NCBI RefSeq assembly: GCF_020745735.1
Contig: NC_083430.1
Coordinates: forward strand, 36,570,909-36,634,908
Reading direction: 5' to 3'
DNA from: Hemiscyllium ocellatum
Lineage: Eukaryota
Length of the DNA stretch: 64,000 bases
Below are positions 1-24,983 of the stretch, piece after piece. Numbering within the stretch: position 1 is the stretch's first letter; the number at the start of each line of letters is the position of its first letter. The translations under genes were made by a program, and so were the position numbers. The notes under the pieces are model-generated. The model was not told where the DNA came from. It worked only from the letters and a program-made list of their open reading frames with translations, and searched no databases.

Positions 1-436
1 GCAGTGGGGTTACCCGTTGTATGACATGAACCCAAGGTCCCAGTTGAGACCATCCTCATGGGGACTGAACTTGGCTATCAGCCTCTGCTCGGCCTTTTTG
101 CATTGTTGCCTGTCCCGAAATCTGCCTTGGAAGATGGTCACCTGAAGGGTCCGAGGTGAAATATCCCAGATTGCTGAAGTGTTCCCTGGCTGGTGATTGT
201 TGTGCGGTGTCCATTCATCCCTTGCTATAGCCTCTGCTCTGTCTCACCATGCCTCAGGGCATCCTTGCCTGCAGCATATGAGATAGACCACATTGGCTGA
301 GTCACATGAGTACCTGCCGCGTACATGGTAGATGGTGTCCCCACATGTGCTGGTGGTATCTGTGTCGACACTCTAACACATCTTGCAGCGTCTGCTGTAA
401 CAGAGTTGTATGGTGTTGGCCTGAAGGCTGGGCAGT

Positions 437-928
437 TTGCTTGTTGCAGTGATTGTTCACAGCAAACTGCCCAGCTTCAGGACAACATCAACCACTACAC
501 CGTACAACCCCATCATAGCAATCACTGCAAGACATGTCAGTGTCGACACAGATACCAACATTACATGTGGGAACACCATCCACCATGTATACGGCAGGTA
601 TGCATGTGACTCAGCAAATGTGGCCTATCTCATATGCTGCAGGCAAGGATGCCCTGAGGCACAGTACATTGGCGAGATAGAGCAGAGGCTACGGCAATGG
701 ATGAATGGACACTGCGTAACAATCACCAGGCAGGAGTGTTCCCTCCCAGTCGGGGAATACCTCAGCAGTCAGGGACATTCGACCTCAGACCTTCAGGTGA
801 CCATCCTTCAAGGCGGACTTCAGGACAGGCAACAACGCAAAATGGCCAAGCAGAGGCTGATAGCCAAGTTCAGACCCCAAGAGGATGGCCTCAATTGGGG
901 CCTTGGGTTCATGTCACATTATATGTGA
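437..928 (+). pseudogene. Degenerate GIY-YIG endonuclease domain of a Penelope-like retroelement
   Basis: Translation YACDSANVAYLICCRQGCPEAQYIGEIEQRLRQWMNGH...GLN matches the PLE GIY-YIG pattern. No reverse transcriptase precedes it. Confidence 0.8.
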
Positions 929-959
929 CCCCACTGCACTATACGCTCTCACAACAAGC

Positions 960-1148
960 ATGCGCGCGCGTGCACACACACAGAAGCACACACTCGCGCA
1001 AACCCTCTCTCATACACCACCACCCCCACTTACACCTGCTCACAGACTTATATCCCATTACACTTTCACACACACACACACACACTCTCTCACAGACACT
1101 CTCACACCCACAGCCACACACTCAGTCTCCCCTGCACGCGCACACACA
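960..1148 (+). repeat. CA/CT-rich low-complexity tract within the PLE 3' region
   Basis: Imperfect (CA)n/(CT)n runs are directly visible. Confidence 0.85.
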
Positions 1149-1595
1149 AGTTTGTGGGGTGAATTTGTTCTTACAAAATCACATTTTATTTTGCTTATAA
1201 ACTGCATAAATCCATGTAAGATTCTGTAACTCCCACTTTAGAAATAGAATCAGTCTGACCTAATATTGGGACACAGACAAACTTCGATACATTATCTGAG
1301 CTGAAATGGCATCTATTTGTTAAAGCTATATTGAGAATGTAACTTTAAAAAAGTTCTGGGATTTACGTATGAAGGAACCAAAACTAACATGATCATTTTA
1401 AAACATGAAAGACTTAAGCCAAATTTGTTTAATATTACATTCAATGACACTGCAATCCTCTTGCTATAAATTCTGTGTCTTATGATTCTGTTCCACAACC
1501 ACCTGAAGAAGCATCGCTTAGAAAGCTAGTGATTCCAAATAAACCTGTTGGACTATAACCTGCTGTTGTGATTTTTAACCTTTTCCAAGCTACTA

Positions 1596-2985
1596 ATAGT
1601 TCAGAAGAAGGGTTACTGGGCCTAAAATGTGGACTCTGCTTTCTCTGCATAGATGATGCCAGACCTGAAGGATTTAGAGTCCTAGATTCATAGAGATGTA
1701 CAGCATGGAAACAGACACTTCAGGCCAAACCATCCACACCGACCAGATATCCCAACCCAATCTAGTCCCACCTGCCAGCACCCGGCCCATATCCCTCCAA
1801 ACCCTTCCTACTCATGTACCCATTGAAATACTTTTTAAATATTGCAATTGCACTAGCCTCCACCACTTCCTCTGGCAGCTCATTCCATACACGTACCACC
1901 CTCTGCATAAAAAAGTTGCCCCATAGATCTCTTTTATATCTTTCCCCCCTCACCCTAAACCTATGCCCTCTAGTTCTGGAGTCCCCGACCCCAGGGAAAA
2001 GACTTTGCCATTTACCCTATCCATGTCCCTCAATTTTGTAAACTACTATAAGGTCACCCCTCAGTCTAGGACACTTCAGGGAAAACAGCCCCAGCTTGTT
2101 CAGCCTCTCCCTGTAGCTCAAATCCTCCAATCCTGGCATTATCCTTGAATATCTTGTCTGAACCCTTTCAAGTTTCACAACATCTTCCTGATAGGAAGGA
2201 GACCAGAATTGCATGCAATATTCCAGCAGTAGTCCAACCAATGTCCTGTACAGCCGCAGCATGACCGCCCAACTCCTGTACTCAATACTATGACCAATAA
2301 AAGAAATAATACCAAATGCCTTCTTCACTATCCTATCTAGCTGCGACTCCACTTTCAAGGAGCTATGAACCTGCACTCCATGGTCTCTTTGTTCAGCAAC
2401 ACTCCCTAGGACCTTACCATTAAGTCCTGCTAAGATTTGCTTTCCCAAAATGGAGCACCTCGCATTTATCCGAATTAAACTCCATCTGCCACTTCTCAGC
2501 CCATTGGCCCATCTGGTCAAGATCCTGTTGTAATCTGAGGCAATCCTCTTCACTGTCCACTACATCTCCAACTTTGATGTCATCTGCAAACTTACTACTC
2601 TTATGCTTGCATCCAAATCATTTATGTAAATGACAAAAAGTCGAGGGCCCAGCACCGATCCTTGTGGCACTCCACTGGTCATAGGCCTCCAGTCTGAAAA
2701 ACAACCCTCCACCACCACCCTCTGTCTTCTACCTTTGAGCCAGTTCTGTATCCAAATGGCTAGTTCTCCCTGTATTCCATGAGACCTATCCTTGCTAATC
2801 AATCTTCCATGGGGAACCTTGTCGAACGTCTTACTGAAGTCCATATAGATCACATCTACCGCTCTCCCCTCAATCCTCTTTGTTACTTTCTCAAAAAACT
2901 CAATCATGTTTGTGAGACATGATTTCACATTTCTCCAGCAATTTCTTGTTTCAGATTTCCAACATTCACAGTTCTTATTTGTATT
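1596..2985 (+). mobile_element. Old PLE-terminus element split by a CR1 LINE insertion
   Basis: 1596-1670 (ttcagaagaagggttactgggcc...gatgccagacctg) resumes at ~2929 (ttctccagcaatttc...tcagatttccaacattcacagttc). The same string is contiguous in other copies (e.g. 28520-28575, 39528-39620). Confidence 0.6.
1675..2928 (-). mobile_element. 5'-truncated CR1-clade LINE (RT C-terminus plus 3' UTR)
   Basis: ORFs 2560..2928 ([46 protein letters not shown]), 2017..2553 and 1762..1953 are typical CR1 ORF2 segments with frameshifts. The 3' end has short ctatga-type repeats. Confidence 0.92.
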
Positions 2986-3678
2986 TTAATGACCAACTCC
3001 TACTCAGAGATAGAGACAGGATAGAGGAATTCAATCTTTATGAAAATCTGAGCACTCTCTAACTGAAATAACTGGAACTACAGTCACACAAGGAGAGGAG
3101 ATATTCATTGGGCTAAATACTAACCTCTCATCCAGCTTGAAAGTAACACAGATAGACCCTTTAATATAGACTCACCAACTGGCTCAACTCTGGAATACAA
3201 CTCAAAGCACAATGAATTAACATCTCCCTGAAATGACAGAGTGAGACAAAGTAGCTGAAAACACAGCACAGATCAGATTGAGAATGGAACAAAGGAGGTA
3301 CAAGTGGAGAACCATCCAGTTGCATGACAGTTTGGAACTCAGAAGACCTGGGTGACAGCTCATTTCCCCACCTATTGATTCAGCTTATCTTGTGTTTGTT
3401 GTTATTTTTACTCAATTCTCTTTCCAATGTTCAACCTTTCAGACATTCCATTGCATTCCGGATCACAGCAACTTGCTAATTTTAAACAAAGTCCTCAGGT
3501 TGTCTGGACAATGTCTCGGGTTGGCTGCTATTATTTCAAAAACCTGGAGGTAGAGAGTCTGGGGATTTCTGAGACGGAGCTCGGTCGGTGGTGATTTTAT
3601 CCAAAGCCCTCCTGTTATGTCTCATGTTCATGAAAGCAATGATGTGAACAGCAGAAGCCATGATTTAACCCACTTTAC

Positions 3679-3771
3679 CTTGAGGATTTCCTGGCACTCC
3701 TTGTTTGCCAAACCACCAACATTCGGAAGATCTGAAGGTCTGAAGGACTCCTCACCCACGAATGGAATTAA
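3679..3771 (-). CDS. MED30: MED30-like coding exon 3 (LIPFVGEESFRPSDLPNVGGLANKECQEILK)
   Basis: Acceptor tttccgtag| and donor AAG|gtaaag; 93 nt, phase 0-0. Resembles MED30 QLIPYVEED...ERREIAE. The gene is probably a paralog rather than the ortholog, and its final exon was not found in the window. Confidence 0.8.
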
Positions 3772-4349
3772 CTACGGAAAGTATAGAAAGCAGACTTTGT
3801 AAAGGAACACAAGAACAGAGGCCATTTAGCTCAAATCTGCTACCCCATCTATTGAGAACACCGATCTGTAACTTCACATTCCTAAATTCCCTAACCTAAC
3901 AAAATAAAATTCAATATAGTCTTGCAAGTTTCATCTGACCACAACCTTCCAGAGCATTTTGCAAGAGATTTTCAAATTCCATTATATTTATTGTATCAAA
4001 CCATGCTCCTGACATCACCTAACATTAAGGCTACATCCTCTTATTCTGTATTCCCTCAGCAGAGAAAATAGTTTGAACGTATCTACTCAGTTAAATTCTG
4101 ATCATTTTAATCACCTCAATTAGATCCTCAACTTCTAAACCATAGAAATACAGATCAGGTTTATGAATATAGCATCCCTTTGAGCCCTGCTACTATTCTG
4201 CAATATCTGATATATCCCCTTCCATTTGGCTGACCAACACCTGCCCTTCCTTCAGCATTGTTAACATCTGGTTAATCGCACCACTCAGTTTAATATGTTT
4301 AAAGTTACAAGGAGACAGGTGGCGAGTGCTATTAAATCTGAGCACTTAA

Positions 4350-4460
4350 GAGCTCCTGTGGTGCATTGTTAGTGTCCCCTACCTCTAATCTGGGAGGCCC
4401 AGGTTCAAGTCACACATGCTCCAGATGCATGCCATTACATCTCTGAACAGATTGAAATCC
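4350..4460 (+). mobile_element. Short tRNA-derived SINE-like repeat (related copies at ~6510-6605 and ~9505-9600)
   Basis: A-box-like tggtgcattgttag and B-box ggttcaagtc, followed by a shared tail (catctctgaacag). It recurs in the window. Confidence 0.55.
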
Positions 4461-4702
4461 ATAAGGGAGCAACTATAACCCTGGGTGGTGGGAGGAACTG
4501 TGAGACTGAATAGTTAAACTACACCCTGTTTTGGAATTTTAGTCTTACCGACTGGTCCAGATTGACAAGTAATCATTCATTTTAAAACTGAAAAGAGGGT
4601 GCGGCCCATTAACTCCAGACTTCATTTCAATTTCCTCGGCCTATTGTTTGCACTGAAAAGTGAGCCTTTTCGAAAGAAAGCAGTGTGTTTGTTGCTAGCT
4701 AC

Positions 4703-4861
4703 CTCTGTAACAGAGACATCAGAGACTCCACACATCTCTCCACACTTATCATATAACAACCGCAGTTTCTTGAAGAGCAGGGTAAGCTGACGTAGGTGCT
4801 CCTGCAGTTTGTTGTACCGCTCCTGATATACCACATGATTCTGTGTGACTCCATTTGGAAG
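4703..4861 (-). CDS. MED30: MED30-like coding exon 2 (LPNGVTQNHVVYQERYNKLQEHLRQLTLLFKKLRLLYDKCGEMCGVSDVSVTE)
   Basis: Acceptor ttttttaatgcag| and donor GAG|gtagct; 159 nt. Clear similarity to MED30 LPNGVT...KLQDNLRQLSVLFRKLRLVYDKC. Confidence 0.93.
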
Positions 4862-7800
4862 CTGCATTAAAAAACAAGTAGTAAGTTACAGATTCGGTAC
4901 AGGGAGAACTTAAAATTCCCAACATGCAAACATGCCCTTCCAATCACAGTGACTCAATGCCACCTTTAATCTTTCTCTCAAATACTCTCCTCTTGCGTCT
5001 TTCTTTTAACAGCTAGAAACATTAATGAGAGCTCAAAATCATGATAGCACTTCACACAGTAAGCAGAGAAATTGGTTCCTCCAACTGAGTCAGCGATCTG
5101 CGTAGAAAAATTTTAGGTAAGTAGCAAAAGATGCAGAGACAAGATTATAAAAAGCAGTGGATTACTGTATTCGGTCATATTCCTGCAGCAGGGCTGAATG
5201 CATATCAAATTGCACTTTTCAAATATTTATCTAATACCCTGTTAAAAAGGAAAAAAATTAGAGGCACCAGCACCTCCATATTCCTTTAATGACACCTTGG
5301 GGCACTGTCCTGCATTGAGGTTTTTCTTGGAAGTATGCAAGAGACATTTCACATGACCTCTCAATTAGCCCAGTTTAATGTATGCTGGAGGGGATGGGTT
5401 TATTTTAATTCCTTTAATTAGTGACCAAGTCCATTCACAGCAGAGTATCGACAGCATCCCTGCTGTAGAGTTAATTAAGTCACACATGCTCCAAATGCGT
5501 GTCATAACATCTCTGAACAGGTTGAAGTACATAGGGAGGAACGATAACCCTGAGTGGTGGGAGGAACTGTGAGACTGAGTAGTTAAACTCCACCCTGTAT
5601 TGGAATAATAAATCTGCCAAGCTCAAAAGCAGATATGGAGATCTCAGGGATTTCATTACAGCAGGTCAGGAAATCTCAGCTAGTTTGCACTGGCCCAGGA
5701 GCAAACACAGTGCAGATTCACAGCAATAATACCAATGCTAAAAGAGTGAAATGCTGACCATTATATTCCCTCAAACGCAGAAGAATAGGGGATTGTCCAA
5801 GGATGGCCATTTAAGAAAATTGACATGAGAGAGCGAGAGCGAAACTATTTTCTCTAGTGGGATAATCCTGAGAGAAAAAAAAGAGTTTCATCTTAAAAAT
5901 TCAAGCTAAACCATTTGGGATGCTGTCAGGAAACATTTCTTCAAACAAAGGATAGTGGAAATCTGGAATACTAAAAAGCCAATGAGGTCGAGGTTGGTTC
6001 AAAACTTCATACACAAAAAATCAATAGGTTTTTGTTCATTAATGCTGTGGAAGATGGAGTGGCAATGCAGAACAGTCACAATCTCGGTGCGTGACAGTGC
6101 AGGCTCGAGTAATTGAATTGCATAATCCTGTCCCTATATTGTGAAAACATTGTCAACTCTGGTCTGCACAAAGGTGTAGGTGAGGCCATTCATTCATTCA
6201 CAGCATGTTAGACGTCCAGTAGTTCTGTTTCTTCTAAAACTTCTGAAATGCAAAATCTGTTATTACATCAGAAAGCACAAGGTCTACATGTAAGTGGTGG
6301 CTCAGATCTTTCCTTGGGGGGGGGATGGGCAGGTCACCTGCCCTATGTTACATGAGTTCCGGCGCCATTCAATTCAACAGGTTTTGGCTCCATCTTTTAG
6401 AAGTGTGAGCTGAAAAATAAAGATGGTTAGAGCAAAGCAATATTGAGAACTTTGATTGATGGAACCAATCATGTCTCTCATTAAACAGTGGAATTAAAGA
6501 CAGGAACAACAGAGGGTACGTGTGGCACAATGGCAGTGTGGGTTCAAGTCCCACCTGTTCCAGAGGTGTTGTAGTATCATCTCTAAACAGGTCGATTAGA
6601 AAATATCTAGAGGAATAACAGAAGGAAATATAATGAATGAGAATCAAATCAAATAGAAAGGGAGAGAAAGAAAGTTGTCAAGAGGGAGGTACGAGATTGT
6701 TAAATTTGAACATTAAATTACAATTGACCAGCTGCAGTAATGAGAGTTTGTGATTCTAGTTGTGCCCTTTCTCAACTGGAGGGCTTGAGGGACGTCACTT
6801 TTTCTGATTTTGAGAATCTTTACAATGTTATGTACCAGCTCTAACTTTGTGAGGTGTTCGGTGACTAATTAATGTGAAAATGCAGCTCATAATTTGAGAA
6901 TCACTAGGGGGCGGTGGTGATGAGGGAAAGATACTTTGATCTTGAAGCTAAAGGCAGAAGGGGACAAAACATCTAGCAACTTGTGATGATTAGCAGCTCA
7001 AGGGATATCTCATCCTCTAAATAAGTGATCAACTAACAAGTGAACAAGAGAGAGTGCCTTTAAGCTAACTTAGTTCCCCAATTCTGTGCTCTTATTTCAG
7101 CTTCCAGTGGCTGTGCTTTCTAATATAACGATACTTGATACAATTAATTGCAACTTACACTGACCAGAAGTGAGTGCTGGGACAGATCGGAATGGAACCA
7201 AGCAAGATGTGCACAGAGGAGATAGCGGAAGAGGATTCAGTTGTAACGAGGAAACCTGGTTGTATTGAAGGAAAACAGCTGGCAAGTGACTTGATAGAGG
7301 CAAGGAAGAACGTATGGGATGGAAGTTCTGTGCCTCAAACATTGCTTCGAATTTTAGATCAATGGGTTACAAATTAAAACTCATTGAAGGCAATTTTAAA
7401 AGTGAATTACGAATTGCCTCTCATTCTCAAGGTCAACATGCAAAAGAATTGCTGGACGGGATTTTGGAGTCAAAAAACTAAGTAATTAAATGCTTGGAAG
7501 GAAAGGGTGTAGGGGGAGCAGTGTGCAAGTTCTAGCCAATTGGCTGAACTGGATTCATAAATCTTAAACACTCAATATTTGAAAAGCCTGTTTCTGTGCT
7601 GCACACTAACAGGAAATCTGCCTATTCCCCAGAGTACTAAATCCGAAAGAGTCACATTTGACTCAAAACAGGAAGCCATTCTTTCTCCATGGATATTACC
7701 AGACCTGCTGCGTTTCTCCAGCGTTTAGCTTTTATTTCAAGTCTCCAGAATCCACGGAATTTTATTTATTGTTTTCAAAATCTTTATCCTACTCCCATTA

Positions 7801-7939
7801 AAAGTAATTCGCAGGATGTGCTCTGTAAATTGCTCCCGTTTCCACCAACTCAAAGTGGCTCAGTATATAGCAACTGCGACATCTCCTGGTCAAAATCTCA
7901 GACTGCAACTCGACAGGAAACAGCCGGATGTTTTATAAA

Positions 7940-8580
7940 AACCGAAAGAACGGCAGATGCTGTACATCAGAAACAAAAGCAGAAATTAAAGGGAGAGTGC
8001 AGCAGGTCTGGCAGCATCTGAGCAGAGAAATCAAGAGTTAACATTTTAAGTCCAGTGGCATTTCCTCAAAACTGGTGGTAGCTAGGAAAATGTCGGTTTA
8101 TATGGGGGGGGGGGGGGGGAGAGTGGGGAAAGAGGGCCAGGAGTAAACAATAGATGGGGAGAGAACCCAAAGAGAGAGAGAGGAACAGTTAGACAGACAA
8201 AGGAGTAGATAATGATCTGGCAAGGAGGGTGAATAGCTGTTAATGGAGATTGATAATGGCTAACAGTGGGTACTGTGTGATAACAAAGCCTGGTGTGTGG
8301 AGATAGGGGCTAGGACATGGGAGGGTTCAAGCCCTAAAGTTATTGAATGCAATATTGAGTCCAGAGGGCTGCAGGGTCCCCAACTTATGAAGAGCTTCGC
8401 TGGAGCACTGCAGCAAGCCTGAGACAGAGATGTCGGCCAGGGAACAGCGTGGGGTGTTGAAGCAGCAGGCAACTGGAAGCTCAGCCTCATTTTCGAGGGC
8501 AGAAAGGAAGTGTTCTGTGAAGCAGTTACTTAGTCTGTGCTTCATTTCCCCAATGTAGAGGAGACCACGTTGTGAGTGGT
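7940..8580 (-). mobile_element. PLE 3' fragment (terminus plus degenerate GIY-YIG C-terminus)
   Basis: The terminus matches other PLE ends in the window. Minus-strand ORFs contain LPVACCFN...LGTLQPSGLNIAFNNF, similar to the PLE endonuclease C-terminus. Confidence 0.7.
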
Positions 8581-9739
8581 TTGTTTTTATTTATCATTGC
8601 ACTTGATCATTTTGGAATTTTCCTGGGTCACACAGGTCATTTGCAATGCTAAATAACAGTATCAGCTTGCCAAAATACTGGAAACACATCAGCAAAGACC
8701 ATGAGGGCGAGTGAATTCACTGGATCCTTGAAAGGAAAATTGGAGTTTGGCTATCAGCCATGCTCAACAGTCATATCTCATTAAATAATGAAAGAAACCT
8801 CACTACAACGTTTTCATCACAAAGACGGTCAGCTTCCACCTTCATAATATCACTCATCTCCAGCCCCTACCTTAGTTCACCTGTTGTGGAAATTATACCC
8901 TTTATAAAAGGTCAGCCCATCCAAAGCTCTGCTGACCGACAGCCTTCTTCCTGAACTGCAATGGCTCAGACAACTTTAGTATCTTTAATTTTTCATTCTT
9001 ACACTGAGATTTAAATAGACCCAGACAAAAGGAGGGGAACCCCAATGAAGCTGGTTTGGGAACTATAGACCCAAAGTCTCTTTGCCATCCAAGCACACTA
9101 CTTTTAATATGTCTGAAATTGCTTACATCCTGTTTCTCAAACATGTTACTTTCAGAAAGAAATCTAAGCGAACCAATATTAACTGCTTCTGCCATTTCCT
9201 AGTCAATCTTTTTCACAAATTGTCTACAAACTTCACCTGCCTCAAGCACAAACCATGTCCTTTGGCTCGACTCTCTGACCAATGGGTAAACGGCTCTTCA
9301 TAGTTTACAATATTTGGATCCCTGTGGTTTGTATGGCTCAGTCACTGTACCATTATGAGAACTTATTTCATGTCAGATGTAAACAGACTGGTTACATGTT
9401 TCCTTTTTTAAAACTTGCAGGCAGGCAAACAGAACTGGTGCTTGTGGCTTTCAACAGGAAACACTAACAGAGCTCAAATCTCATACAGTTAATAAAGCCT
9501 AAAGCCGTCTTGTGGCAAAGTGGTAGTGTCCCTACCCCAGAACGGGAGGCACAGGTTCAAGTCCCACAAACTCAAGTGATGTGTACTAACATCTCGGACA
9601 GTGAAGGAACGGCAATGTATTTCGAAGCCAGAATGATGTGCCCCTTGAAGGGGAACTTGCAAGTGTCCTTGTCCTAGTTAACTGAGGTCAAAGGTGCTGT
9701 TGAAGATGCCTTGGTGAATTGCTGCGCTGCAGTAAAGTA

Positions 9740-10012
9740 TCTGTGTGGTGTTGACACGTTCTCAGTGTCTGTGTGGGTTTCCTCAAGGTGCTCCAGTTCC
9801 CTCCTACAATCCAAACACGTGCAAGTTAGGTGGATTGTCCATGCTAAATTGCCCTGTAGTGTCCGGAGATGTTCAGAATAGTTGGATCAGCCGTGGTAAA
9901 TGTGAGGTGACAGGGATAGAATAGGGGGTTGGGTCTGTCTGCAACGCCCTTCATGAAGTCAGTGCAGATTCGATGGGCTGAATGGCTTCTTTCTGCACTG
10001 TAAGGATTCTAG
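9740..10012 (+). mobile_element. Degenerate V-domain (HE1-like) SINE
   Basis: Contains gtgtgggtttcctc..gtgctcc..ttcc.tcc.acaatccaaa..gtgca.gttagg, shared with the intact copy at 43924. Confidence 0.75.
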
Positions 10013-10256
10013 GATATTGTAGATGATCTGGGAGCTGGTGAAAAGCACTATGTGAATGCAAGTCTTTTCTTCCTGAAATGAGTGGACAAGCCTGCTGTGA
10101 CAACAAAGAATGTCTTTCATGCTCTCTCTGCCTAACTTATGCTGTAATTTAACTGAAAGTCATTGGTGCAGATGTTTTGTACCTGAATTCAACGGTGTCC
10201 TATCGCTCAATACAACAACGAGCAGTACATTAAGGAAGGAGGGAGAAGGCAGTCAC

Positions 10257-10451
10257 CTGCGTTGCCCGGAGCAAGTGGAAGATGTCCATTGTACGTGCCA
10301 CAATGTCCTGAACAGTCTCCTGGCCGACTTTGCAGAGGGTGACACATGTGATCTCACGCACGGCACTCGGTGGTTGCTGTGGGGGGACTGGCGCTGCAGT
10401 CTGAGAGTGTAGGCCAGGGACCCTTGGCCCAGCACCCGGTAGCGCTGTCAT
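10257..10451 (-). CDS. MED30: MED30-like first coding exon (MTALPG...AVREITCVTLCKVGQETVQDIVARTMDIFHLLRATQ)
   Basis: ATG at 10451, donor CAG|gtgact, 195 nt. The motif LC(K/R)xGQETVQDIVxRTM(D/E)IFxLLR is the MED30 N-terminal signature. A splice acceptor (tgtttctctgcag|) lies at 10465, just upstream of the ATG. Confidence 0.93.
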
Positions 10452-11289
10452 GACCTAAGGCAACCCTGCAGAGAAACAAACAAGGAGAGACAAGTATGTA
10501 AATGATTCCTTGAAGGGGTTTGGAGTTTAGAAAGTGCAAGTTGATCAGATCAAGGTGTTTTAAATGATTCAATGACTTGACACACAACAGCAGTTCTAGA
10601 TGGAACCCTAGAAACAAGGGGCTAGCCTGTTCAAAAGCAACTTACATTTATATGAAACATCTTCAACACCATAAAATTTCCCAAAGCAATTCAAAAGAAT
10701 GTGATCCAACAAAAAATTGATACCAAGCCACAGGAGGAAAATTTGGGTCAGGTGACCAAAAGCTCAGTAAAATGACGGAATATATGGAGCATTCCAAAAG
10801 CAAAAAAGGTAGATACAGGAAGGTTCGAGGAACTCTGGGACTAGGAACCAAGCATCTGAGGCACAGCTGCCAATGGTAAAATATCGTAACTGGAGAAGCA
10901 GAGAGATCGCTGTGGAGGAAGACACGGCAAAATCAATACTTTTTCTCTCCCCCAAAGAGGTAGAAAGAATTGTGGAACTCTGATTCCTAAAGTCTGTGAA
11001 TTCCATGAGCCATGGGAACTTGCACAAAATCCATACATATTTTTTGGGTAAGGGCAGCGAGAGATTTCAAACAAAGAATGGTCCATCATTTAAAGGAACA
11101 GATTAGCTATAATCTACTGATGATAGCAACTTCTATGCAATATCTTGTTACAGTAGCTTGTGAGAAGATTACCCATCCTTCCAGCTAGACAAAGATTTCA
11201 ATCATGAATAGAAATTAATATAGACAAAGAAAATAAACAGTATAAGAATAACCTCCTTAAGGAAAAGCACCTATTTTACAGACAGCCAC

Positions 11290-11702
11290 TGTTCAGTTAG
11301 TTGCACCCACCTCAGTCAGAAGGTCCAACACTTATTCCAGGAATTGGTGCAGAGAAATCCCTGCTGGCATTTCACTGCAGGACTGATGGAATGTTGCACT
11401 GTCAGAGGTGTTTATTTTTATGTAAGACATGAAACCAAGGTTCTGTCAACCTCCTTAGCTGGATGTAAAAGCTCCCATGACACTACTTTGAAGACAAGTG
11501 GGGAGGTCTGCCTGGTATTCCAGCTGATATTTATTCTTCCACTAACACCAATACTAATAATAGTAAATTATCTGGACGTTATCTCAATCTGCTAAGAACA
11601 AAGTGGTTGCTGTTTCCTTCATCACACAGAGACCAAACTTCAAAAGCACTTGGGTGACAACAGATCACAAATGTGCTATTCGATGCAACTCTTTCTTCTT
11701 TT
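11290..11702 (+). mobile_element. Deu-domain SINE (SacSINE1/AmnSINE-like), old copy
   Basis: Contains tgcactgtcagaggtg...aaaagctcccatgacactactttgaag...attatctggacgttatc...cttcaaaag...tgcaactctttc. Related copies lie at 17880-18200(-), 26250-26870, 30720-30930, 38650-38810, 45520-45910(-) and 50690-51100. Confidence 0.6.
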
Positions 11703-11829
11703 GATTCACAATTAGCTTTAGATTTAAATCAGCAAAAGCCTGCACATAGCAATAAAATGAAATCTTTCTCATTGTACAAGGATGCATATCCACAGGTGCT
11801 TCCATAGTAAAGATGCTATGGAGCTTTAG

Positions 11830-12345
11830 CTACACAAACCTGCCTCTTTAAACAGGCCATGGTGCTCACAGTCACCACTTCAAAACATTTATCTCATTCA
11901 AAACTCTGCTGCTCATATCCTATTTTGTGCTAAGTCTCACTCACCCATCATACCAGTGTAAACAAACCTACACCAGCTTCCAATGTGACAAGTTGATTTA
12001 AAATAAAAATGTTCATCCTGTGTTTAGATTCCACCAGGACTTCAACTCTTCTTTATTTCTGATGAGCAGTCCTGCACACCTCACACTCCTGTAATTTTAG
12101 TAGTTTCTGTATCCCGCCTGCCCAACCCCAATTTCCTTCAATTCACCATTAGCAGGTGCATGGTCAGATACTTGGACCACAAGCTTTGGAAGCTTCTCCT
12201 TAGCTTCTCTATTCTCCTTAAAGCCTGTCAGAGTCCCTTTGACCAAGTTTTTCACCAACCTTTCTATCTCCATCTTTGGTTCTGTCTAGTTCTCTGATTA
12301 ATTGCCCTGTGTTACTTTGGATGTTTTGTTGTGTCAAAGGTACAG
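11830..12345 (+). mobile_element. Degenerate L2-type LINE 3' end
   Basis: The stretch caaaactctgctgctcatatc...cacccatcataccagtg...ctacaccagcttccaatg reads like the L2 ORF2 C-terminus (QNSAA...PITPV...LH.LP). Confidence 0.5.
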
Positions 12346-12873
12346 TTTTTAAACTTAACATCGTAGATGGTAAAGATGCTGCTTATAGTGGCACAGAGCC
12401 AGCAAATATCTTAAACTGATAAAATGGACTACAGATTGTTGTCATGTGCTTTTTTCCCTCCCTTATACAGAATCCCATTAGCTCCCCCACACCCAACTTA
12501 TTGAAAAAAATTTACTCATGTTGCAGTTATTCCAGTTTTATATAATCATTCTCAAGATGTGAATGTCAAATGGCAAGGTCACCCTTTATTGCTCATTCTT
12601 CTGAATTGCTCTGCTAAAGTGTTGCTATTTTTCTTGGTCTGTACCCCTAAAATTCCTGTGTTCCCTTATCCCATGTCTCTCACTCAAGAATACAAAACCA
12701 CAAAGGGAACAATAATGAATAGTACGTGCGTAAAAAAGGTGTGGATCAGATAGTATTTAGACATTTTCCAAGGGGCATTTGACATCCTTAGTCTTCCTAT
12801 CAGGACTGTGATCAGACCTCAGTTATCATTCACAGAGTCATTCTGCGAGTTATTAATGTCTTTTGTACTCTGT

Positions 12874-13142
12874 TCGGGACAAAGAAAAAAATTGCAGGTG
12901 CTGGAATCCAAAGTAGACAGGCAGGAGGCTGGAAGAACACAACACGCCAGGCAGCATCAGGAGGTGGAGAAGTCTATATTTCAGGTGCCACCGTTCTTTA
13001 GGACTGGGGGGTGGGTATAGGGGGAGCTACACTGTCCTCTACACACTACCAATCTTGAAGAAGAGTCACACCAAAAACTTAAACTTCTGGCTTGATGCTG
13101 CCTGGCTTGTTGTGTTCTTCCAGCCTCCTGCCTGTTCTACTA
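12874..13142. mobile_element. Old fold-back PLE-terminus element with TSD
   Basis: Inverted arms gtagacaggcaggaggctggaagaacacaac / gttgtgttcttccagcctcctgcctgttctac. Flanking direct repeat tttgta(c/t)tctgt at 12862-12873 and 13143-13154. Confidence 0.75.
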
Positions 13143-13474
13143 TTTGTATTCTGTAGCAGTCCTCCCTGTATTAACCACAGTTTGGTGTCATTGACCACCT
13201 CAAACTTTGCCAATGAAAGTCTGTCCATCTCAATCTTCCAAACATTCAAGTGACCCTGAAACATGGACAAATGTCACTGACTTGTTTGTATAGGCATACC
13301 CTGATGTTCACTGTCTCAGCTTGGCTGGCTTGAGTGTCAAAGTTTGTTGGATTTTTTCTTAAATTTCTAAAAAGTGAAGCTAACAAAAGTTAGGTTTATG
13401 CAATCTCTCAGTTTTTTCAAAATAAAAATTTGTTCATGGGATGTGGCTCTCTCTGGCTAGGCCAGTACTGTATT

Positions 13475-14160
13475 TAGACTCATAGAATCATAGAGATGTA
13501 CAGCATGGAAACAGACTCTTCAGTCCAACCTGTCCATGCTGACCAGATATCCCAAACCAATCTAGTTCCACCTGCCAGTGCCCGGCCCATATCCCGCCAA
13601 GCCCTTCCCATTCATATACCCATCCAAATGCCTCTTAAATGTTGCAATTGTACCAGTCTCCACCACTTCCTCATTCCATACACGTACCACCCTCTGTGTG
13701 AAAACGTTGCCCCTTAGGTCTCCCTTATATCTTTCCCCCTCAACCTAAACCTATGCCCTCTAGTTCTGGACTCCTCAACCCCAGGGAAATGACTTTATCT
13801 ATTTATCCTATCCATGCCCCTCAATTTTGTAAACCTCTAAGGTCACCCTTCAGCCTCCAACGCTCCAGGGAAAACAGCCCCAACCTGTGCAGCCTCTCTC
13901 TGTAGCTCAGATCCTCCAACCCTGGCAACATCCTTGTAAATCTTTTCTGAACCCTTTCAAGTTTCACAATACCTTTCCGATAGGAAGGAGACCAGAATTG
14001 CACACAATATTCCAATAGTGGCCTAACCAATGTCCTGTAGAGCCGCAACATGACCTCCCAACTCCTGTACTCAATACTCTGACCAAAAAAGGAAAGCAGA
14101 CCAAACGCCTCCTTCACTATCCTATCTACCTGCGACTCTACTCTCAAGGAGCTATGAACC
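13475..14160 (-). mobile_element. 5'-truncated CR1-clade LINE
   Basis: ORF 13821..14171 (LYRTLVRPLLEYCVQFWSP...LERVQKRFTRM) belongs to the same family as 1675-2928. Confidence 0.9.
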
Positions 14161-14397
14161 ATCTTGACCATCCTTAATTGCTAGGAATTAACTGGCTTGC
14201 TAGCTCCATTTCAGAGGGCAGTTACTGGCTGTGGAGTCATATGCAGGCCAGATCAGGTAAGAATGACAGGTTTCCCTGTGTCAACCAGATAGGTTTTTAA
14301 AACAACGGTCTCCATCATGCTAGTTTTTGTTTTAATTCTAGAACATTAGCCTGACTGCTGGATTACCACGCAGATCACCTTCAAAGTTAGAATAAAA

Positions 14398-14656
14398 GTG
14401 GTTAGCACTGCTACCTCAGCGTCATTCCAGCCTCCGACAACTGTGTGTGGATTTTGCACATTCTCCCCATGTCTGTGCGGGTTTCCTCCCACAATCCAAA
14501 GATGTGCAGGTTAGGTGAATTAGCGTAGTGTTAGGCGTATTAGTCAGGAATAAATATAAGATAGGGGAACGGGTCTGGGTAGGTTACCCTCCGGAGGGCG
14601 GGTGTGGACTTGTTAGGCCGAAGGGCCTGCTTCCTTACTGCAGGAAATCTATTCTA
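14398..14656 (+). mobile_element. V-domain (HE1-like) SINE, partly deleted
   Basis: gtggttagcactgct...tgtgtgtggattttgcacattctcccc...gttaggccgaagggcctg. Confidence 0.8.
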
Positions 14657-15559
14657 AAATTATCTTTTTACAGACAGGAGAAAATATTTAGTATTCAAAA
14701 GCGTCAATAAGAGAATTCGATGCGTCGACCTGCTTTCCCTGGTTTCGCTCAAATCAACGCAAGGTTTCTTGCTGGGATGAGCCGACTATCAAAATAACTA
14801 TGAACCCACGTGCTGAGGAGAGTAGAGAGGAAAGTGGAGATCTGTTTTTGACAAAGCTATCTTACACTCTTCCCATGTGGGCGTCCTTTTCAAATTCCAA
14901 ACGCCCAGAAACAGATTGAGAGAGGAAGTGGCCCCAGCTGTTGCAAACTTCTGCCCCGGGGGAGAAGACCATTCGATTTAAAATGAAACACACGGGGCGC
15001 AACAGCGAGAGAAATCAGCCCCCGCCGTTAAGTGTTTTAACTGGATTAATTTGTAGAAAAGCGACATGGATAACTTTGTGGAAGAAAGAGGGCGGAATTT
15101 TTTGAAGATATTACAAATAGGAAACGGCAGTAAACTCCCTCTTGTAACAGGAGGGAGACCATGCGCTGATCGTCAATTAGAGAAAAGAGGGAGGGAGAAA
15201 CCAAGTCAATCTCATAGGGGGAGGGTCACAGGGGAAGAACACTTGTCAGTTTCAGGAGACCCTAGAGACACTGTATCAAACATTTCGAGCGCTGGTGAAG
15301 TCAACATTCCGAGACAATGTTACAACGTTCTAAACAAGTTGCTACAATGTATCACAACATGTCAGACATTCCACAACCGTCCCACACCCTACTGCAAAAA
15401 CAACTCACTAAATACTTTCTACTTGTTTTAATTCAGAAACAAAATTGAACTCAAGAAACAATGGACTGCACGACACTGACTCAATTGTGTCATTGCTAGA
15501 AACAGAGCGGCGCCGAATCTTTTGTCCTCAAAAAGTTAGCTTGTTTATGTTCTTTATGA

Positions 15560-15900
15560 GACTCACACACAGATGAGGAAAGAACTAGCCGCTCCTCCTC
15601 CCCCAATTCCGATATTTACCTTACACCTCTCTCAGCTTAAAATCCAAAACCGCCAAGTTTGCTCTCCAGCCTTTCGTATGTAAAATAGAAACTTTCAATA
15701 TTGTAACAGGAAGAGGTCTTGTTGTTCGTGAACAAATCAGTGATCGAAGGTAATGACTTCACTTCCGCACCGCTAAGTATCGCTCCGTGATTGAGTGAGT
15801 TCTTAGATTACGGGAGTTGGCGAATGGGTTTGAAAGATTTGTTGGCCGTCCCTTCTAGTTCAACGAAAAGGAGACATTGCTACGTCAAACATATAACGTC
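15560..15900 (-). promoter_or_regulatory. Probable promoter and non-coding first exon of the MED30-like gene
   Basis: Local CpG enrichment over ~14700-15900, ETS/GABP motif CACTTCCG at 15760-15767, CRE half-site tacgtca at ~15881. Minus-strand donor candidates are AG|gtaaat at 15620 and |gtgagt at 15567. The acceptor before the ATG at 10465 needs an upstream exon. Confidence 0.55.
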
Positions 15901-15998
15901 TCCTTTATAGAGAGGCAAAGCTGATCGAATCCTATACGGTGAATAAAGGAAACAAGTAAATTATGTAAATAATATTGTCATTAATATACTCTGTACGG

Positions 15999-16259
15999 TT
16001 GAAAATGTGTTGCTGGTTAAAGCACAGCAGGTTAGGCAGCATCCAAGGAACAGGAAATTCGACGTTTCGGGCCAGAGCCCTTCATCAGGAAATTCGACGT
16101 TTCGGGCCAGAGCCCTTCATCAGGAACCTGATGAAGGGATCTGGCCCGAAACATCGAATTTCCTATTCCTTGGATGCTGCCTAACCTGCTGTGCTTTAAC
16201 CAGCAACACATTTTCAACTGTGATCTCCAGCATCTGCAGACCTCACTTTTTACTCGAAG
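15999..16259. mobile_element. Young fold-back PLE-terminus mini-element with 15-bp TSD and three hammerhead cores
   Basis: Near-perfect inverted arms (gaaaatgtgttgctggttaaagcacagcagg... / ...cctgctgtgctttaaccagcaacacattttc). TSD atatactctgtacgg at 15984-15998 and 16260-16274. Confidence 0.9.
16056..16126 (-). ncRNA. Tandem pair of minimal type-I hammerhead ribozyme motifs
   Basis: The minus strand reads (TTC-CTGATGA-AGGGC-TCTG-GCCC-GAAAC-GTC-GAAT) twice, as a 35-bp direct repeat at 16051-16085 and 16086-16120. It has the conserved CUGANGA/GAAA core, helix II, a palindromic ACGU in place of helix III and a GUC cleavage triplet. Activity is untested. Confidence 0.7.
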
Positions 16260-16969
16260 ATATACTCTGTACGGGCCTGCCGGTGCCTACCGATCGTGCT
16301 AAAAGTGTATTACTAGAATCAGCATGGACTATCTCCACCAGCTAGAGAGGAGTGTGGAAAGAGAGGATAACAGACTGTCCATTCCTCCACCCAAAAGTTA
16401 CATCCAACCTTTGAATAGGCCTGAAAACAAAAACATGCTGCAGATCACAGCGGGTCAGGTCTTGCTCTTCAAAACCAGTTTCTCTCAGCTTTTGGCCAAC
16501 TATCACAACAACCAAAAGAGCTCGGTTTTCTTTATTAAATCACTCCTAACATATACATTATTTTCTGGTGCATTATCTCGCCTGCAGACTATATTGTGCA
16601 CTAAAATAAGAGGTATAGTGTCAACTCAATGTACACGCTCAACTTCTAGAGCAAGATCCATGCTTGTCAGGAGACAATTGTCACCAATTAGATTCATAGA
16701 GTGATGAAAAGGGAGACCAGCCCAAGATGTCGGTGCTGGGACTTTGATGTTCTTATCAGATCATTCTATCAAATTTTCCCCCATATTTATCCATTTCATT
16801 TTTAAAAACTTCTTGAATCTGCTTCTATCACACTTTTCAGCCAGTGCACCTTTATTTGTAGTGAAGAGTAAAACATTATTTCTTCAAGCAGTCTCTAGAT
16901 CTGTTTAGGGATACTGGCAAGAGACTCAATATGGCATACAAATTTTGAAATACAAAGTTTCAACTAATG

Positions 16970-16975
16970 TTTATT
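16970..16975 (-). terminator. Candidate poly(A) signal (AATAAA) for SLC30A2
   Basis: tttatt on the plus strand ~540 nt past the stop, at the end of an AU-rich 3' UTR. A second one lies at 16851-16856. Confidence 0.55.
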
Positions 16976-17515
16976 TTTGTTAGCAAAACTTTAATTAAAG
17001 TATTGTTTCATAAATATGAAGAACATGGATATAGACAATTCTAGAAACATTAAACAATAAACTTATTTTAACAAAATTGTCAATATTGGTTTCCCAGCAC
17101 CAGGAATAAAGGTCAGACCAATCTTTTAAAAGTTACATTCAAGAAAATGGATTATCTCAACTCAAAGATGAAGTTCTCTCTCCCAACCATTCTCCTAGAA
17201 GACATCAATACATCCACCAAACAATATTGCTGGTGGGAGATGAATATCCAATTGATACATTTATGGTCAAGTTTCATTTTGCAACTACACAAAAATGTCT
17301 TAAAAGCCTTAATCTTACATTGTATAAAGGACACCACAACCCACTGTCAACACAATGGCTGGACTCTGGTTTAGACAGCAGTAAGGTAACTTCACTTCAC
17401 ACATTATCTTTCCTCTTGTACACAACTCATTCCAGATGTGATTCCCCAAGAAATGAACTCAAATCATGCCTCTCTCAGACATACAGATTAGAGAAACTCC
17501 TTGCACTGATGGGAA

Positions 17516-17661
17516 CTAATCTCTGGGTTCCTGGCATTCCTTACAATTGACCATATCATCAGAATAATTTTCTATTTGGATAGTGATGGAATGGAAGTCA
17601 AACTTGCTGTGGAGCATATGGTTAGCTTCAGCCAATATTTCCCGAGCATTTGCATCCTCAT
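17516..17661 (-). CDS. SLC30A2: Zinc transporter ZnT2, exon 8 (..EDANAREILAEANHMLHSKFDFHSITIQIENYSDDMVNCKECQEPRD*)
   Basis: Acceptor ttcttgcag|, TAG at 17518-17516, 146 nt. C-terminal TIQIE...CxxC motif of vertebrate ZnT2/3/8. Confidence 0.93.
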
Positions 17662-18265
17662 CTGCAAGAAACAAAGTTCACAAATCATAAAAATGAGCAA
17701 AAAAGGGAAGAAATTAAAAAAGGCTAATGGAATCTTGATCTTTATCTGAAGTGAATACACTATGATGCTAAAATCTTAGTTCGAAAAAATGTCATTTCTC
17801 TTTTAAATTGCAGGCCTGACATTTTAGAAAATGGAAGCAGGAGGGAGTATTGTGGGCCTGCCTTGTATTCGTGGTTTAAGATTGATTGTGAAACACAGCT
17901 GTGTGCTGAAAAATCTTAACACGTGTCTACCAATTTGGTGATAACTAGAATTATGTTTTAGTGAGATTGTCAGTAGGATAAATATTGGACAGGACACCAA
18001 AGAGGACTCCCTTCCTCTTCTCATAATGCCATGAAATCTTTTACATTCACCCAAGAGCTCCAATGGGACCCAGATGTCATCTTTCATTTGGGATGTTAAA
18101 CTGACAGTGCAGCACACTCTGTACTGACACTTTTAATTTGAATTGTGTGTACCAGAATTGAACCCAAAATCATCCCACTCAGGGGAAAGAGAGTGACCCA
18201 TGGCCAATACAGCTTTAAAATACTTACAGCAATCCATGTCAAAAGCAAAATACATTAACACTTAC

Positions 18266-18400
18266 TGATGGCAATGTGGACTGACAACAGTGGTTGGTTG
18301 ACGGTCAGTGCCCAGATGTGGAGGCTGTGCATCGCTTTCACCCCATCAATTAACAGGAGAGACTCTTTAACCTGATTAAAATCCATTCCTTTTGGAATTC
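18266..18400 (-). CDS. SLC30A2: ZnT2 exon 7 (GIPKGMDFNQVKESLLLIDGVKAMHSLHIWALTVNQPLLSVHIAI)
   Basis: tttttgacag| ... A|gtaagt; 135 nt; HSLHIW zinc-binding motif of the C-terminal domain. Confidence 0.95.
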
Positions 18401-20206
18401 CTGTCAAAAATGCAGTGCTGAGCTTCAGTGTGAATGATGAGCGTCAATGAACACATTGTGCTCTTATTTTCAACCTTACTGTTTCCCCAGCAACTAAATG
18501 AATATCTCTACATCCCTTGCTTTCATGTCTTAGTTCTTTTTGTGACAAGACTACATCTTAACTGACTTTAACTCCCTCCATATCTCAAATTCTGCCAAGA
18601 CTCAAACCCTTGTCTCCCACTCAGAGGCTCAAGAACATCTCCCATGCATTGGCAGAATGCAAAGGAAGACAAATGTCATCCCCACTGGAACCTTGAGTTC
18701 CCAGTATTTCTCTCACTTCCTCTTCCTCCTCCCCCTCCCCAACTCTTCCCCACCCACCCCCCAGTCAACACCTTCCTTATAACTCTTCAAAATCAATGCT
18801 ACCATCTCACCTACTTTTTTCTATTCACAACAGACTTGTTTTATTGTGCAATCCCTTTCAGATTTCAAGTGACAGCACAGTTGTGCATCTTAAAGAGAAC
18901 TTTGCTTGGTATAAATCTTTGTTCTGTGCACACCATATTTCTCATTGCTGCATAAACACACATCTTAGAAAACATTTATATGGCCTCCCACTGCTTTAAA
19001 TATTTCTTCATAGTTCTTATTCTACCTCTTTCCATTGAACTCAAACTGACAATATAATTCCCTACAGAAACTGATTCTTTCCTCCACCATCACCAATTTG
19101 TCAACTCACTTACTCTTCACACCTTTCCAAAGTCAAAGGCTTTGAAAGCTAAGCAAGACCATTCTTCTTTTGCTTCATATGTTCCCATGCTTTCTTCACT
19201 GTGGCATTCTGCACCTTCATTTACGTTTTCTCAGCAGATGAAAATGTTAAATCACTGAACTTCGCCAAGACAATTCAGCCCATCATGTCTGCAGCCGCTA
19301 TCAAATGATCATTATAACTTAATACCATTCGCCATACCCTTGCATGTTGTTTCTTTTCATTTAAGCATCTAATGTCCTTTTGAATGTCTCAATTGACTCT
19401 GCCCTCACACCTCCAAGCAATGAATTCTAGACATAAACCACTCACCGAAAGAGAGAATATTTTTCACATGTCAATTTCTACAATTTGCAAATCACTTTAA
19501 ATCTATGCCACCTTTGTCTCAATCCTCTTACTCAGTTTCCCATTACACTGTCTATCCAGATTCCTTCATGATTTTAAAATCATCTATTAGATCTCTTTGC
19601 CTTCTTCTCTCGAACCCCAAATTCACCAATTTTATCCCTTACTGAAGTTTCTCATTCCTAGAAACATTTATGTAAATCTTTTCTGCAATGCACGGATATT
19701 CTTCCTATAGTATAGCACTCAAAATGTACGCAGTGCACAATGCCTAACAACTGTCTTGCATAAATTCAGCATGACCACCTCGCTCTTGTACTGCAAACTG
19801 CATTTCGAAAGCTGAAGATGCTGAGTATTTTCTTAACTGCTCTTTACCAGACTTCCAAATGTTCTCTCAAAAATCACGCTTCACTTCTCTAATATGCTTT
19901 TCACTTATCCTCTGAATACCTGTAGTTTTTTTTTGATTCTCAATTGCATTTTCAACTGGACACTTGTCATAACATACTTTTACTTCTTTATTTTAATTTT
20001 TACCTTTTTATTCCATCCGGAGAGCTCTAGATTTGTTTGTCCTCTTTCAAGGAGAACATACATTGAATTGTACCCAAAGCCTTTCCTCTTTGAAGGTAGA
20101 ACAGTGTTCTGCTTCAAGTTTATCTTATCAACATTTCATTCTAGTCTAAGTGGCAGGGTCCATTCTTGCACCTTAAAGTCAGCTCTTCCCAGAGTTAATT
20201 ACTTGC

Positions 20207-20312
20207 CTTCCATTAGTATGCAGAGAACGTCCCTCAGAATGGAGATGGTGGCCCCCAGAACAAGAATGGAAAAAAGGAAAGTGCAGATTGGATCCACTAT
20301 TTTATATTCAGG
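20207..20312 (-). CDS. SLC30A2: ZnT2 exon 6 ([35 protein letters not shown]), ending in a GC donor
   Basis: gtatttag| ... GAAG|gcaagt; 106 nt keeps the frame into exon 7. Confidence 0.92.
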
Positions 20313-21331
20313 CTAAATACAAATGAAACAAAAAAAAACTTATTCCAATGCAGTGAGCAAATGTTTAAATATCCCTTCACACTCAGAGATTCTGAAGTTT
20401 AACAGAAAATCAGTTGTGTTCTTTTCAGGGATCTCCGAATCCCTGGTTCCTGTATGAACAGGAATATTGTCAATCCAAGTACATTGCTTCAGCATGAAGT
20501 AAATCTCAATATTTTAAGAGCTAATTGCAGTAAAATGCATCAAAGAATACAGTGTGACACATGCTCAAATTCCTTCACCATACAATTGGCAGTTGCATAT
20601 TCAGCTGTCTCAGCACCAAGGTCTGGAATTCTTTCCCTAAACCTCATCTTTCTTCTGCTTTTTTAAATTCCATGTCCTTGACCATCTCTTCAAATACAAC
20701 TCAGTACCAAATTTTGTTGAAAGTCATTCCTAAAGCACCTTGGGACACTTTACTAGGACTCTCTCTCCCACCCCTAACAATCCTCCAATGATTGTCCATA
20801 GTTTTCCAGGAATTAAAGGTTAGTCATCTCAAGACTCCTAATAGCCACCTGGAGGAAAACAAAAACACAGGAGTGTAAAACTTGTCTATTACCCCATGTT
20901 TTTTGAACATTTTCAGTTATCAATCCTAAAGTATTGAACATGAGTTAAAAAGCTATTTGAGTAGGGGGAACAATCGGGGCAGGAACAAAACCTAAAGAAA
21001 TGCATTCATATTTGGTAACATGTAGAAATAGGGTTTAATGACCTTACAGATGACCCTCAGAAGTAAGCTGTGATGGAACTGTAGCCTCAGTATCATACAC
21101 TCATACTCTGCTAGGCTGGAACCTATTGAGTGCAGGATGTGTCACTCTGTATCCTTACCCTCCTTACAGCCCGTGAATAAATGCTGTTCAAAAGTAGCTT
21201 AGAAGTATAGCCTGTGCCCAGATGAAGATCCCAAAAAACTCATTCTACAACATGCCCTCCCCAAAATGCCCATTTACAAAATTAGATGTATTCCCCTTAA
21301 AAGCCATGTTACCGAAAGACTGTTCCTGTAC

Positions 21332-24959: not shown

Positions 24960-24983
24960 AATCAATCAATCAATCAATCAATC
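24960..24983 (+). repeat. (AATC)n microsatellite
   Basis: About six direct copies of aatc. Confidence 0.9.

Follow-up and report, generated by a model that had tools for sequence, protein, structure and literature searches.

A divergent MED30-like gene of Hemiscyllium ocellatum: an ancient paralog, probably from the second vertebrate genome duplication, that probably still acts as a MED30-type Mediator subunit

Is the MED30-related gene found in a 64,000-nucleotide stretch of Hemiscyllium ocellatum DNA the shark's own copy of this Mediator subunit or a second one, and, if a second one, how old is it and what might it do? The stretch, called the window here, covers positions 36,570,909 to 36,634,908 of contig NC_083430.1 (RefSeq assembly GCF_020745735.1), and the gene, MED30-like, lies on its minus strand. 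An earlier note, made from the letters alone, had read it as a divergent MED30 paralog retained from vertebrate genome duplication in sharks and lost in mammals. Taken together, our analyses make it probable that MED30-like is an ancient MED30 paralog, most plausibly from the second vertebrate genome duplication (2R), whose product still acts as a MED30-type subunit of Mediator. The parts of the gene that fall within the window are the following.

10465-10257, minus strand: first coding exon (exon A), with 14 nt of 5' untranslated region and codons 1-65; AG acceptor, donor GTGACT.
4861-4703, minus strand: second coding exon (exon B), codons 66-118, covering the end of the helix 1 loop and helix 2; acceptor ...aatgcag, donor GTAGCT.
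3771-3679, minus strand: third coding exon (exon C), codons 119-149, covering the variable linker and the start of helix 3; acceptor ...ccgtag, donor GTAAAG.
1-3678, minus strand: first 3.7 kb of intron 3, the portion of the window that precedes the fourth coding exon.

Translation starts at the ATG at 10451 (10451-10449, minus strand), and exons A to C, with phase 0 at all junctions and GT/AG borders, jointly encode 149 amino acids. An exhaustive profile search with exon 2, two word-indexed searches and cluster look-ups led to XP_060703388.1, a 180-aa H. ocellatum protein annotated as "mediator of RNA polymerase II transcription subunit 30-like", whose residues 1-149 are identical to the product of the window (149/149). 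The C-terminal 31 aa were not found when the whole window was searched by tblastn with the sequences of six relatives. For assembly GCA_020745735.1 the public gene table gives the gene a length of 12,696 nt between start and stop codon. The window also aligns collinearly, at 91-94% identity, with a locus of Chiloscyllium punctatum (L013), in which window position 1 corresponds to L013:22186 and Chiloscyllium exon 4 lies at L013:24387-24479. Because of this span and this collinearity, we place the fourth coding exon (31 aa plus the stop codon) about 2.2 kb to the left of window position 1, hence outside the window, which explains the lack of a C-terminal match. The earlier reading of three in-frame MED30-family exons with canonical splice sites was therefore right as to exons, frame, sites and family, and incomplete in that the gene has four coding exons. 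The last exon, whose loss or disruption the earlier note had named as the mark of a pseudogene, is found both in the annotated model and at the orthologous loci of Chiloscyllium, skate and chimaera. The same exon 2 limits, and indeed all four coding exons with their phases and splice sites, are kept in Chiloscyllium, skate, chimaera and gar; gene length is 2.1 kb in the chimaera (Callorhinchus), as against 12.7-16.7 kb in sharks and skate.

Membership in the MED30 family is clear. The Pfam Med30 profile (PF11315; gathering cut-off 28.1 bits) matches both exon A (E = 1.4e-9, 39 bits, profile positions 2-31) and exon B (E = 1.3e-15, 58.5 bits, profile positions 32-79), and it is present in all relatives returned by the searches. 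With phmmer, the full 180-aa protein aligns collinearly over residues 19-180 with the MED30 chains of solved Mediator (8t1i_Y, E = 8.5e-55; 7emf_3, E = 2.7e-53). Canonical MED30 (TRAP25; Mediator structures 7EMF, 6W1S and 8T1I) shares with MED30-like the Pfam family, the four coding exons with phase-0 junctions and the three-helix plan. The differences from canonical MED30 that the earlier note had listed hold against the mouse and human chains of the solved structures: ITCVTLCKVG stands in place of VNTA(S/T)LCRIG, and GVTQNHVVYQERYN in place of GVTYHTGTYQDRLT. MED30-like further differs from the canonical protein in a longer proline-rich N-terminal tail that starts MTALPGAGPR, in fixed residues in helix 1 (I34, V37), at the end of exon 1 (A63, T64) and in helix 2 (L101), in a GVTQ loop for GVTY, in having three residues fewer before exon 4, and in lying on a different chromosome with different neighbours.

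The more conserved copy that the earlier note expected elsewhere in the genome exists. Using a profile of canonical sequences followed by cluster lists, we retrieved canonical H. ocellatum MED30 (XP_060680158-61) from a 144-Mb contig of the same assembly (GCA_020745735.1), in which MED30-like lies on a 55.9-Mb contig. Within 10 kb of this canonical gene the public gene table lists no neighbours. At least 15 other cartilaginous fishes also carry canonical MED30, among them Rhincodon, Stegostoma, Chiloscyllium, Scyliorhinus, Carcharodon, Heptranchias, Heterodontus, skates, rays and Callorhinchus. Shark canonical MED30 is identical to mammalian MED30 at 138 of 178 positions; MED30-like is 54-55% identical both to mammalian MED30 and to the canonical MED30 of its own genome. 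That MED30-like might be the only MED30 of sharks, as the plain "MED30" in the records of several species could suggest, is ruled out by the canonical copies in the same genomes.

MED30-like was already on record. RefSeq annotates it in H. ocellatum and in more than 20 cartilaginous fishes as "MED30-like" or "MED30", so the earlier suspicion that such records existed was correct. Bourbon (2008) reported that fish have two Med30 paralogs; since the animals surveyed also included human, mouse, chicken and frog, the same work documents the lack of a second MED30 in these four (PMC2475620). Our literature search found no paper that names a second MED30 gene or treats its origin. Beyond the annotation and the 2008 survey, the present work dates the duplication to a time before cartilaginous and bony fishes parted, describes the EXT neighbours of the two copies, estimates selection and adds the skate cDNA. 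RefSeq naming is inconsistent, in that some sharks (e.g., Scyliorhinus canicula) have the divergent copy recorded as "MED30" and the canonical one as "MED30-like", and others the reverse, which could mislead the transfer of annotation by orthology.

Both types occur well beyond the sharks. Proteins that begin with MTALPxAGxRxPGL, close exon 1 with RATQ and carry GVTQ in their loop and LRLLY within helix 2, which together form the signature of MED30-like, are annotated in bichir, sturgeon, gar, bowfin and teleosts, and each of these lineages also has a canonical MED30. In a maximum-likelihood tree of 53 proteins over 192 alignment columns, 11 cartilaginous-fish and 12 ray-finned-fish proteins of this kind form one clade, here called L-type, with support of 100/99 and a stem of length 0.98, about ten times the canonical branches. 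The 22 canonical MED30 proteins of jawed vertebrates lie together on one side of a branch (78/71), and the hagfish protein falls outside both types. An approximately unbiased (AU) test rejects a single clade of all cartilaginous-fish copies (difference in log likelihood 36.2, p = 6.7e-5). Because long branches can attract each other, the tree was rebuilt with either L-type group dropped; the remaining group still came out beyond all canonical jawed-vertebrate proteins and not beside the canonical copy of its own lineage. At eight positions both L-type groups share a residue that differs from the canonical one, and at five of these (I34, V37, T64, L101 and E157) the hagfish protein is canonical, so the L-type states are shared derived characters. 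On this evidence from protein comparison, the duplication predates the split of cartilaginous and bony fishes, since each lineage has the two copies and the two types group separately in the tree.

These results support the history first proposed, and the refuting outcomes that the earlier note had named did not occur. MED30-like does not group with tetrapod MED30; it belongs to a separate, well-supported clade with the other MED30-like proteins, and a duplication confined to sharks is rejected. The earlier claim of a second copy kept in sharks and lost in mammals has held up, with the correction that ray-finned fishes kept it too. None of the tetrapods examined has the L-type copy, which survives in the cartilaginous and the ray-finned fishes. 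Ray-finned MED30-like (gar, bowfin, sturgeon, bichir and teleosts) shares with the shark gene the clade, the derived residues and the N-terminal motif, and with the chimaera gene a tail-to-tail, EXT1-like neighbour. In comparison, the shark protein, 61% identical to that of gar, is the less changed of the two: its C-terminal helix keeps the canonical MDQLRNLIWDIN.MLAMRN, for which ray-finned fishes have MDQMRNLLWDVNAMLTLRK.

MED30-like is under strong purifying selection. The ratio of nonsynonymous (dN) to synonymous (dS) divergence, a check that the earlier note had proposed, was computed by the Nei-Gojobori method over the 149 codons of the window. Against Chiloscyllium it is 0.13 (dS 0.068, dN 0.009; 3 amino-acid versus 7 silent changes), against skate 0.058 (dS 0.98, dN 0.057), and against the chimaera 0.066, with dS saturated.

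In the skate Leucoraja erinacea the gene is transcribed and spliced. Twelve short Logan contigs carry the complete, uninterrupted 187-aa MED30-like frame, and the seven retrieved come from seven different runs. Three of them, aligned to the skate locus, split exactly at the exon borders and include an extra upstream non-coding exon; two of the aligned contigs start with the SMART template-switch oligo, and they are therefore cDNA, with the oligo marking a capped 5' end. Exact skate canonical MED30 was found on 66 contigs and exact MED30-like on 12 to 13, a crude hint of lower or narrower expression of MED30-like. For the chimaera, an NP_ accession and GenBank AFK11398.1 suggest that the MED30-like record is derived from mRNA. 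The skate transcripts also point to a feature upstream of the coding exons in the window.

15626-15716 (approximate), minus strand: putative non-coding first exon and transcription start, by homology to skate mRNA.

A 67-nt stretch of the window (15639-15704) aligns with the extreme 5' end of the MED30-like mRNA of skate (76%, E = 7e-5). In skate the template-switch oligo directly precedes this conserved 5' block, which is near-identical in Chiloscyllium, and GT donors lie at about 15626. A non-coding first exon and promoter are thus probable at about 15716-15626. From there the ATG exon is 5.2 kb further downstream, and the stop codon of the zinc-transporter gene described below is 1.8 kb upstream. 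Just upstream of the putative exon is an ETS-type motif, GCGGAAGTG, which would fit a broadly active promoter without a TATA box.

How the second copy arose is a question for its neighbours, two of which lie in the window, upstream of MED30-like and on the same strand.

17516-27143, minus strand: zinc transporter of the ZnT2/3/4/8 group (read as SLC30A2), with seven recognisable exons; stop codon at 17518-17516.
42662-58374, minus strand: MuRF-type TRIM gene (read as TRIM63), upstream of the transporter; its exons code for a RING, a B-box, a coiled coil, a COS-box and an acidic tail.

The transporter ends (17516) 7,065 nt upstream of the MED30-like ATG (10451), a spacing identical to that in the public gene table, where the upstream neighbour of MED30-like is a gene with Cation_efflux and ZT_dimer domains. 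Chains from solved structures, which include no SLC30A2 for comparison, matched the exon for transmembrane segments 2-3 in the order SLC30A3 (76 bits), ZnT8 (63) and SLC30A4 (52), the C-terminal exon in the order SLC30A3 (37) and ZnT8 (24), and the exon for the His loop and transmembrane segment 5 in the order Xenopus ZnT8 (61.5) and SLC30A3 (52). By these scores the transporter is not clearly ZnT8. The earlier statement that MED30-like lies directly downstream of SLC30A2 is accurate for a zinc transporter on the same strand; the name SLC30A2 comes from gene order. In the TRIM gene, Pfam places the RING exon within 58069-58374 and the B-box exon within 54137-54397, and the coiled-coil exon (47896-48213) matches the coiled coil of human TRIM63 (PDB 4m3l, E = 1.9e-15). 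A reading of this block as TRIM54-SLC30A3 instead of TRIM63-SLC30A2 is disfavoured, as the EXT neighbour and the strand pattern speak against it.

On the other side of the gene, comparison among species revealed an Exostosin gene. In Callorhinchus a 353-aa gene with RING and B-box is followed by MED30-like and then by an Exostosin gene on the opposite strand, and in gar and Tetraodon a convergent (tail-to-tail) Exostosin gene likewise follows MED30-like. Upstream, a Cation_efflux gene on the same strand accompanies MED30-like in Chiloscyllium as in Hemiscyllium; neither a zinc-transporter nor a TRIM gene was found within 10 kb upstream of MED30-like in gar and pufferfish. In Callorhinchus milii (locus L001, 7-12134), unlike in sharks, the TRIM gene and MED30-like are separated by a 4.8-kb gap in which no zinc-transporter gene is called. 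The Exostosin exon beside MED30-like scores 87 bits against EXT1, 46 against EXTL3 and 38 against EXT2 (solved chains), and over 59 residues its identity to human EXT1 is 69-76%. For the corresponding exon next to the canonical gene of Diretmus this identity is 90%; synteny on the canonical side rests on this one teleost, whose gene model is oddly fused. Each MED30 copy thus has its own EXT1-type neighbour, as block duplication predicts.

The Diretmus argenteus locus is peculiar in its own right (L014, 10001-34183). Its annotated canonical MED30 is fused to 3' exons of EXT1 on the same strand, 6 kb past MED30 exon 3; MED30 exon 4 was not found at this locus, and a tandem array of partial exon-2 copies occupies 10889-11353. 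The fused model is either a local rearrangement or an artefact of assembly or annotation.

We propose that MED30 was duplicated once, before cartilaginous and bony fishes diverged, and, because both copies adjoin an EXT1-type gene, most likely as part of a block copied in 2R. Three or more gene families in two blocks are the usual signature of the vertebrate genome duplications. The order and strands TRIM - ZnT - (MED30-like) - EXT mirror the human arrangement TRIM63 - SLC30A2 - EXTL1 at 1p36, and they parallel the order SLC30A8 - MED30 - EXT1 at human 8q24. The best-surviving alternative is an equally old, small segmental duplication of the MED30-EXT pair alone. EXT is the sole flanking family seen on both sides, the zinc-transporter and TRIM neighbours take their names from gene order, and the tree leaves the duplication node undated relative to cyclostomes, all of which would suit such a small copy; the parallels with the human map fit the genome-duplication signature instead, and we consider a segmental origin unlikely.

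After the duplication, the long stem branch suggests, the L-type copy would have changed fast before coming under the strong purifying selection seen today. An AlphaFold2 model based on 47 aligned sequences has helices at 36-64, 74-108 and 138-179 (predicted local distance difference test scores of about 90, with a range of 77-94, in the helices), parted by a short loop and a disordered linker and preceded by a disordered proline-rich tail; the position of helix 3 relative to the others is not reliably predicted (template modelling scores 0.39-0.53). In a Foldseek search of the PDB the top six matches, and the only significant ones, were all MED30 chains of mouse and human Mediator (E = 1e-9 to 4e-8). 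Conservation is uneven along the protein. The C-terminal helix encoded by exon 4 is 77% identical to the MED30 of the same shark and 81% to mammalian MED30; against the canonical protein the coiled-coil exons reach 57-63%, the linker 32-45% and the N-terminal tail about 30%. In helix 1 and the loop, MED30-like carries fixed differences at positions that are invariant in all canonical proteins (28 such positions).

In mouse Mediator, MED30 has the same plan; it and MED28 form a pair in the upper Tail, and both contribute their C-terminal helices to a bundle with the C-terminal helices of the Head subunits MED11 and MED22 (bioRxiv 10.1101/2020.10.05.326918). By analogy, MED30-like would fold as MED30 does, into a coiled coil of two helices followed by a linker and a long helix at the C terminus, and would take the place of MED30 in the upper Tail, paired with MED28. 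Its nearly unchanged C-terminal helix would bundle with MED11 and MED22 of the Head, and the changed helix 1 and loop would present a different exposed surface. Because the docking helix is kept and helix 1 and the loop are changed, a MED30 position with a different surface is the simplest reading. Cells that express the gene would then hold Mediator with either MED30 or MED30-like.

A protein that has left Mediator, either as a coiled-coil protein with a new role or as a dominant-negative decoy that captures MED28 but stays outside the complex, could also account for the stem branch about ten times the length of canonical branches and for the changes at canonical-invariant positions (28 of them) in helix 1 and the loop. 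We judge this improbable, slightly more so than a segmental origin: the Head-docking helix is the best-conserved part (77-81%), the three-helix layout is retained, and some 400 million years of strong purifying selection agree with a constrained interface to several partners.

Returning to MED30-like as a working MED30-type subunit, the bolder proposal is that it is no spare copy, and that it serves as a functionally distinct alternative to MED30, mutually exclusive with it in the MED28-MED30 pair. We put this forward tentatively, as possible yet doubtful. If it is true, sharks and ray-finned fishes build two kinds of Mediator that differ at the junction of upper Tail and Head, the changed surface of helix 1 and the loop recruits different partners, and tetrapods have lost the second kind. 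MED12/MED12L, MED13/MED13L and CDK8/CDK19 are likewise vertebrate-wide duplicates of Mediator subunits, and two papers present the kinase-module paralogs as believed to exclude each other from one shared position (PMC12451381, PMC2475620). Those pairs belong to a separable module and were kept in mammals; the MED30 pair concerns a subunit of the upper Tail in contact with the Head and was lost in tetrapods. Subunit paralogs of Mediator are known for the kinase module and hardly discussed for the core or Tail, and here a MED30 duplicate has been under strong constraint for more than 400 million years in two large vertebrate groups, which makes it a clean case of a probable ohnolog retained in fishes and lost in tetrapods. 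Zebrafish carries both genes and is thus a ready system for studying whether Mediator composition at the Tail/Head junction is regulated.

Much less probable is that MED30 was duplicated independently in cartilaginous and in ray-finned fishes and that long-branch attraction joined the products. The tree tool did warn that long branches meet, and each L-type group alone goes to the base of the jawed vertebrates, as a long branch would in any case. The AU result, the derived residues that both groups share where the hagfish is canonical, the shared N-terminal MTALPxAGxRxPGL motif, and the tail-to-tail position of both groups next to an EXT1-like gene of the same divergent type all argue for a single event. 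A decaying pseudogene or annotation artefact in H. ocellatum, for which one could cite the position of the last exon beyond the window, is hardly credible given the intact frame, the canonical splice sites, 100% identity to a complete 180-aa RefSeq model, 3 amino-acid versus 7 silent changes relative to Chiloscyllium, and complete orthologs in more than 20 cartilaginous fishes.

Several points weigh against an ancient 2R paralog still at work in Mediator. The last exon and the downstream neighbour lie beyond the window, and expression in H. ocellatum is taken from the RefSeq model and from relatives. The protein is short (192 columns), the monophyly of the canonical group and the position of the hagfish are weakly supported, and, as the tool warnings indicate, each divergent group could have been drawn towards the root by long-branch attraction. 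The labels SLC30A2 and TRIM63 follow gene order and not a tree, and the scores do not separate SLC30A2 from SLC30A3. EXT exons were searched for in the window, in the Chiloscyllium locus (L013), including 10 kb downstream of the gene, and in the skate locus (L005), and none was found; the public gene table has no gene within 10 kb downstream of MED30-like in H. ocellatum. The EXT-family neighbour is accordingly a finding from chimaera, gar and pufferfish, not from H. ocellatum. Finally, it is from fold and conservation that we infer the presence of MED30-like in Mediator.

Further sequence elements lie in and near the gene. An inverted repeat at 15995-16221, which ends about 300 nt before the putative transcription start of MED30-like, has 95-nt arms (15995-16089 and 16127-16221) that are 96% complementary and contains CUGAUGA...GAAAC motifs in tandem units; a search of window positions 1-20000 gave no Rfam match at gathering score. 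In intron 3 is a reverse-transcriptase fragment (2560-2985, minus strand; Pfam RVT_1, E = 1e-12). An element of roughly 700 nt that resembles the tail of a long interspersed nuclear element occurs in two copies of the same orientation (86-91%), at 1672-2345 in intron 3 and at 13472-14134 in the 5' intron. A short interspersed element is likewise present twice within MED30-like introns, at 4407-4537 and, between the first two coding exons, at 5477-5606 (87-92% identity), and similar stretches were recognised by eye near 6520-6580 and 9510-9580.

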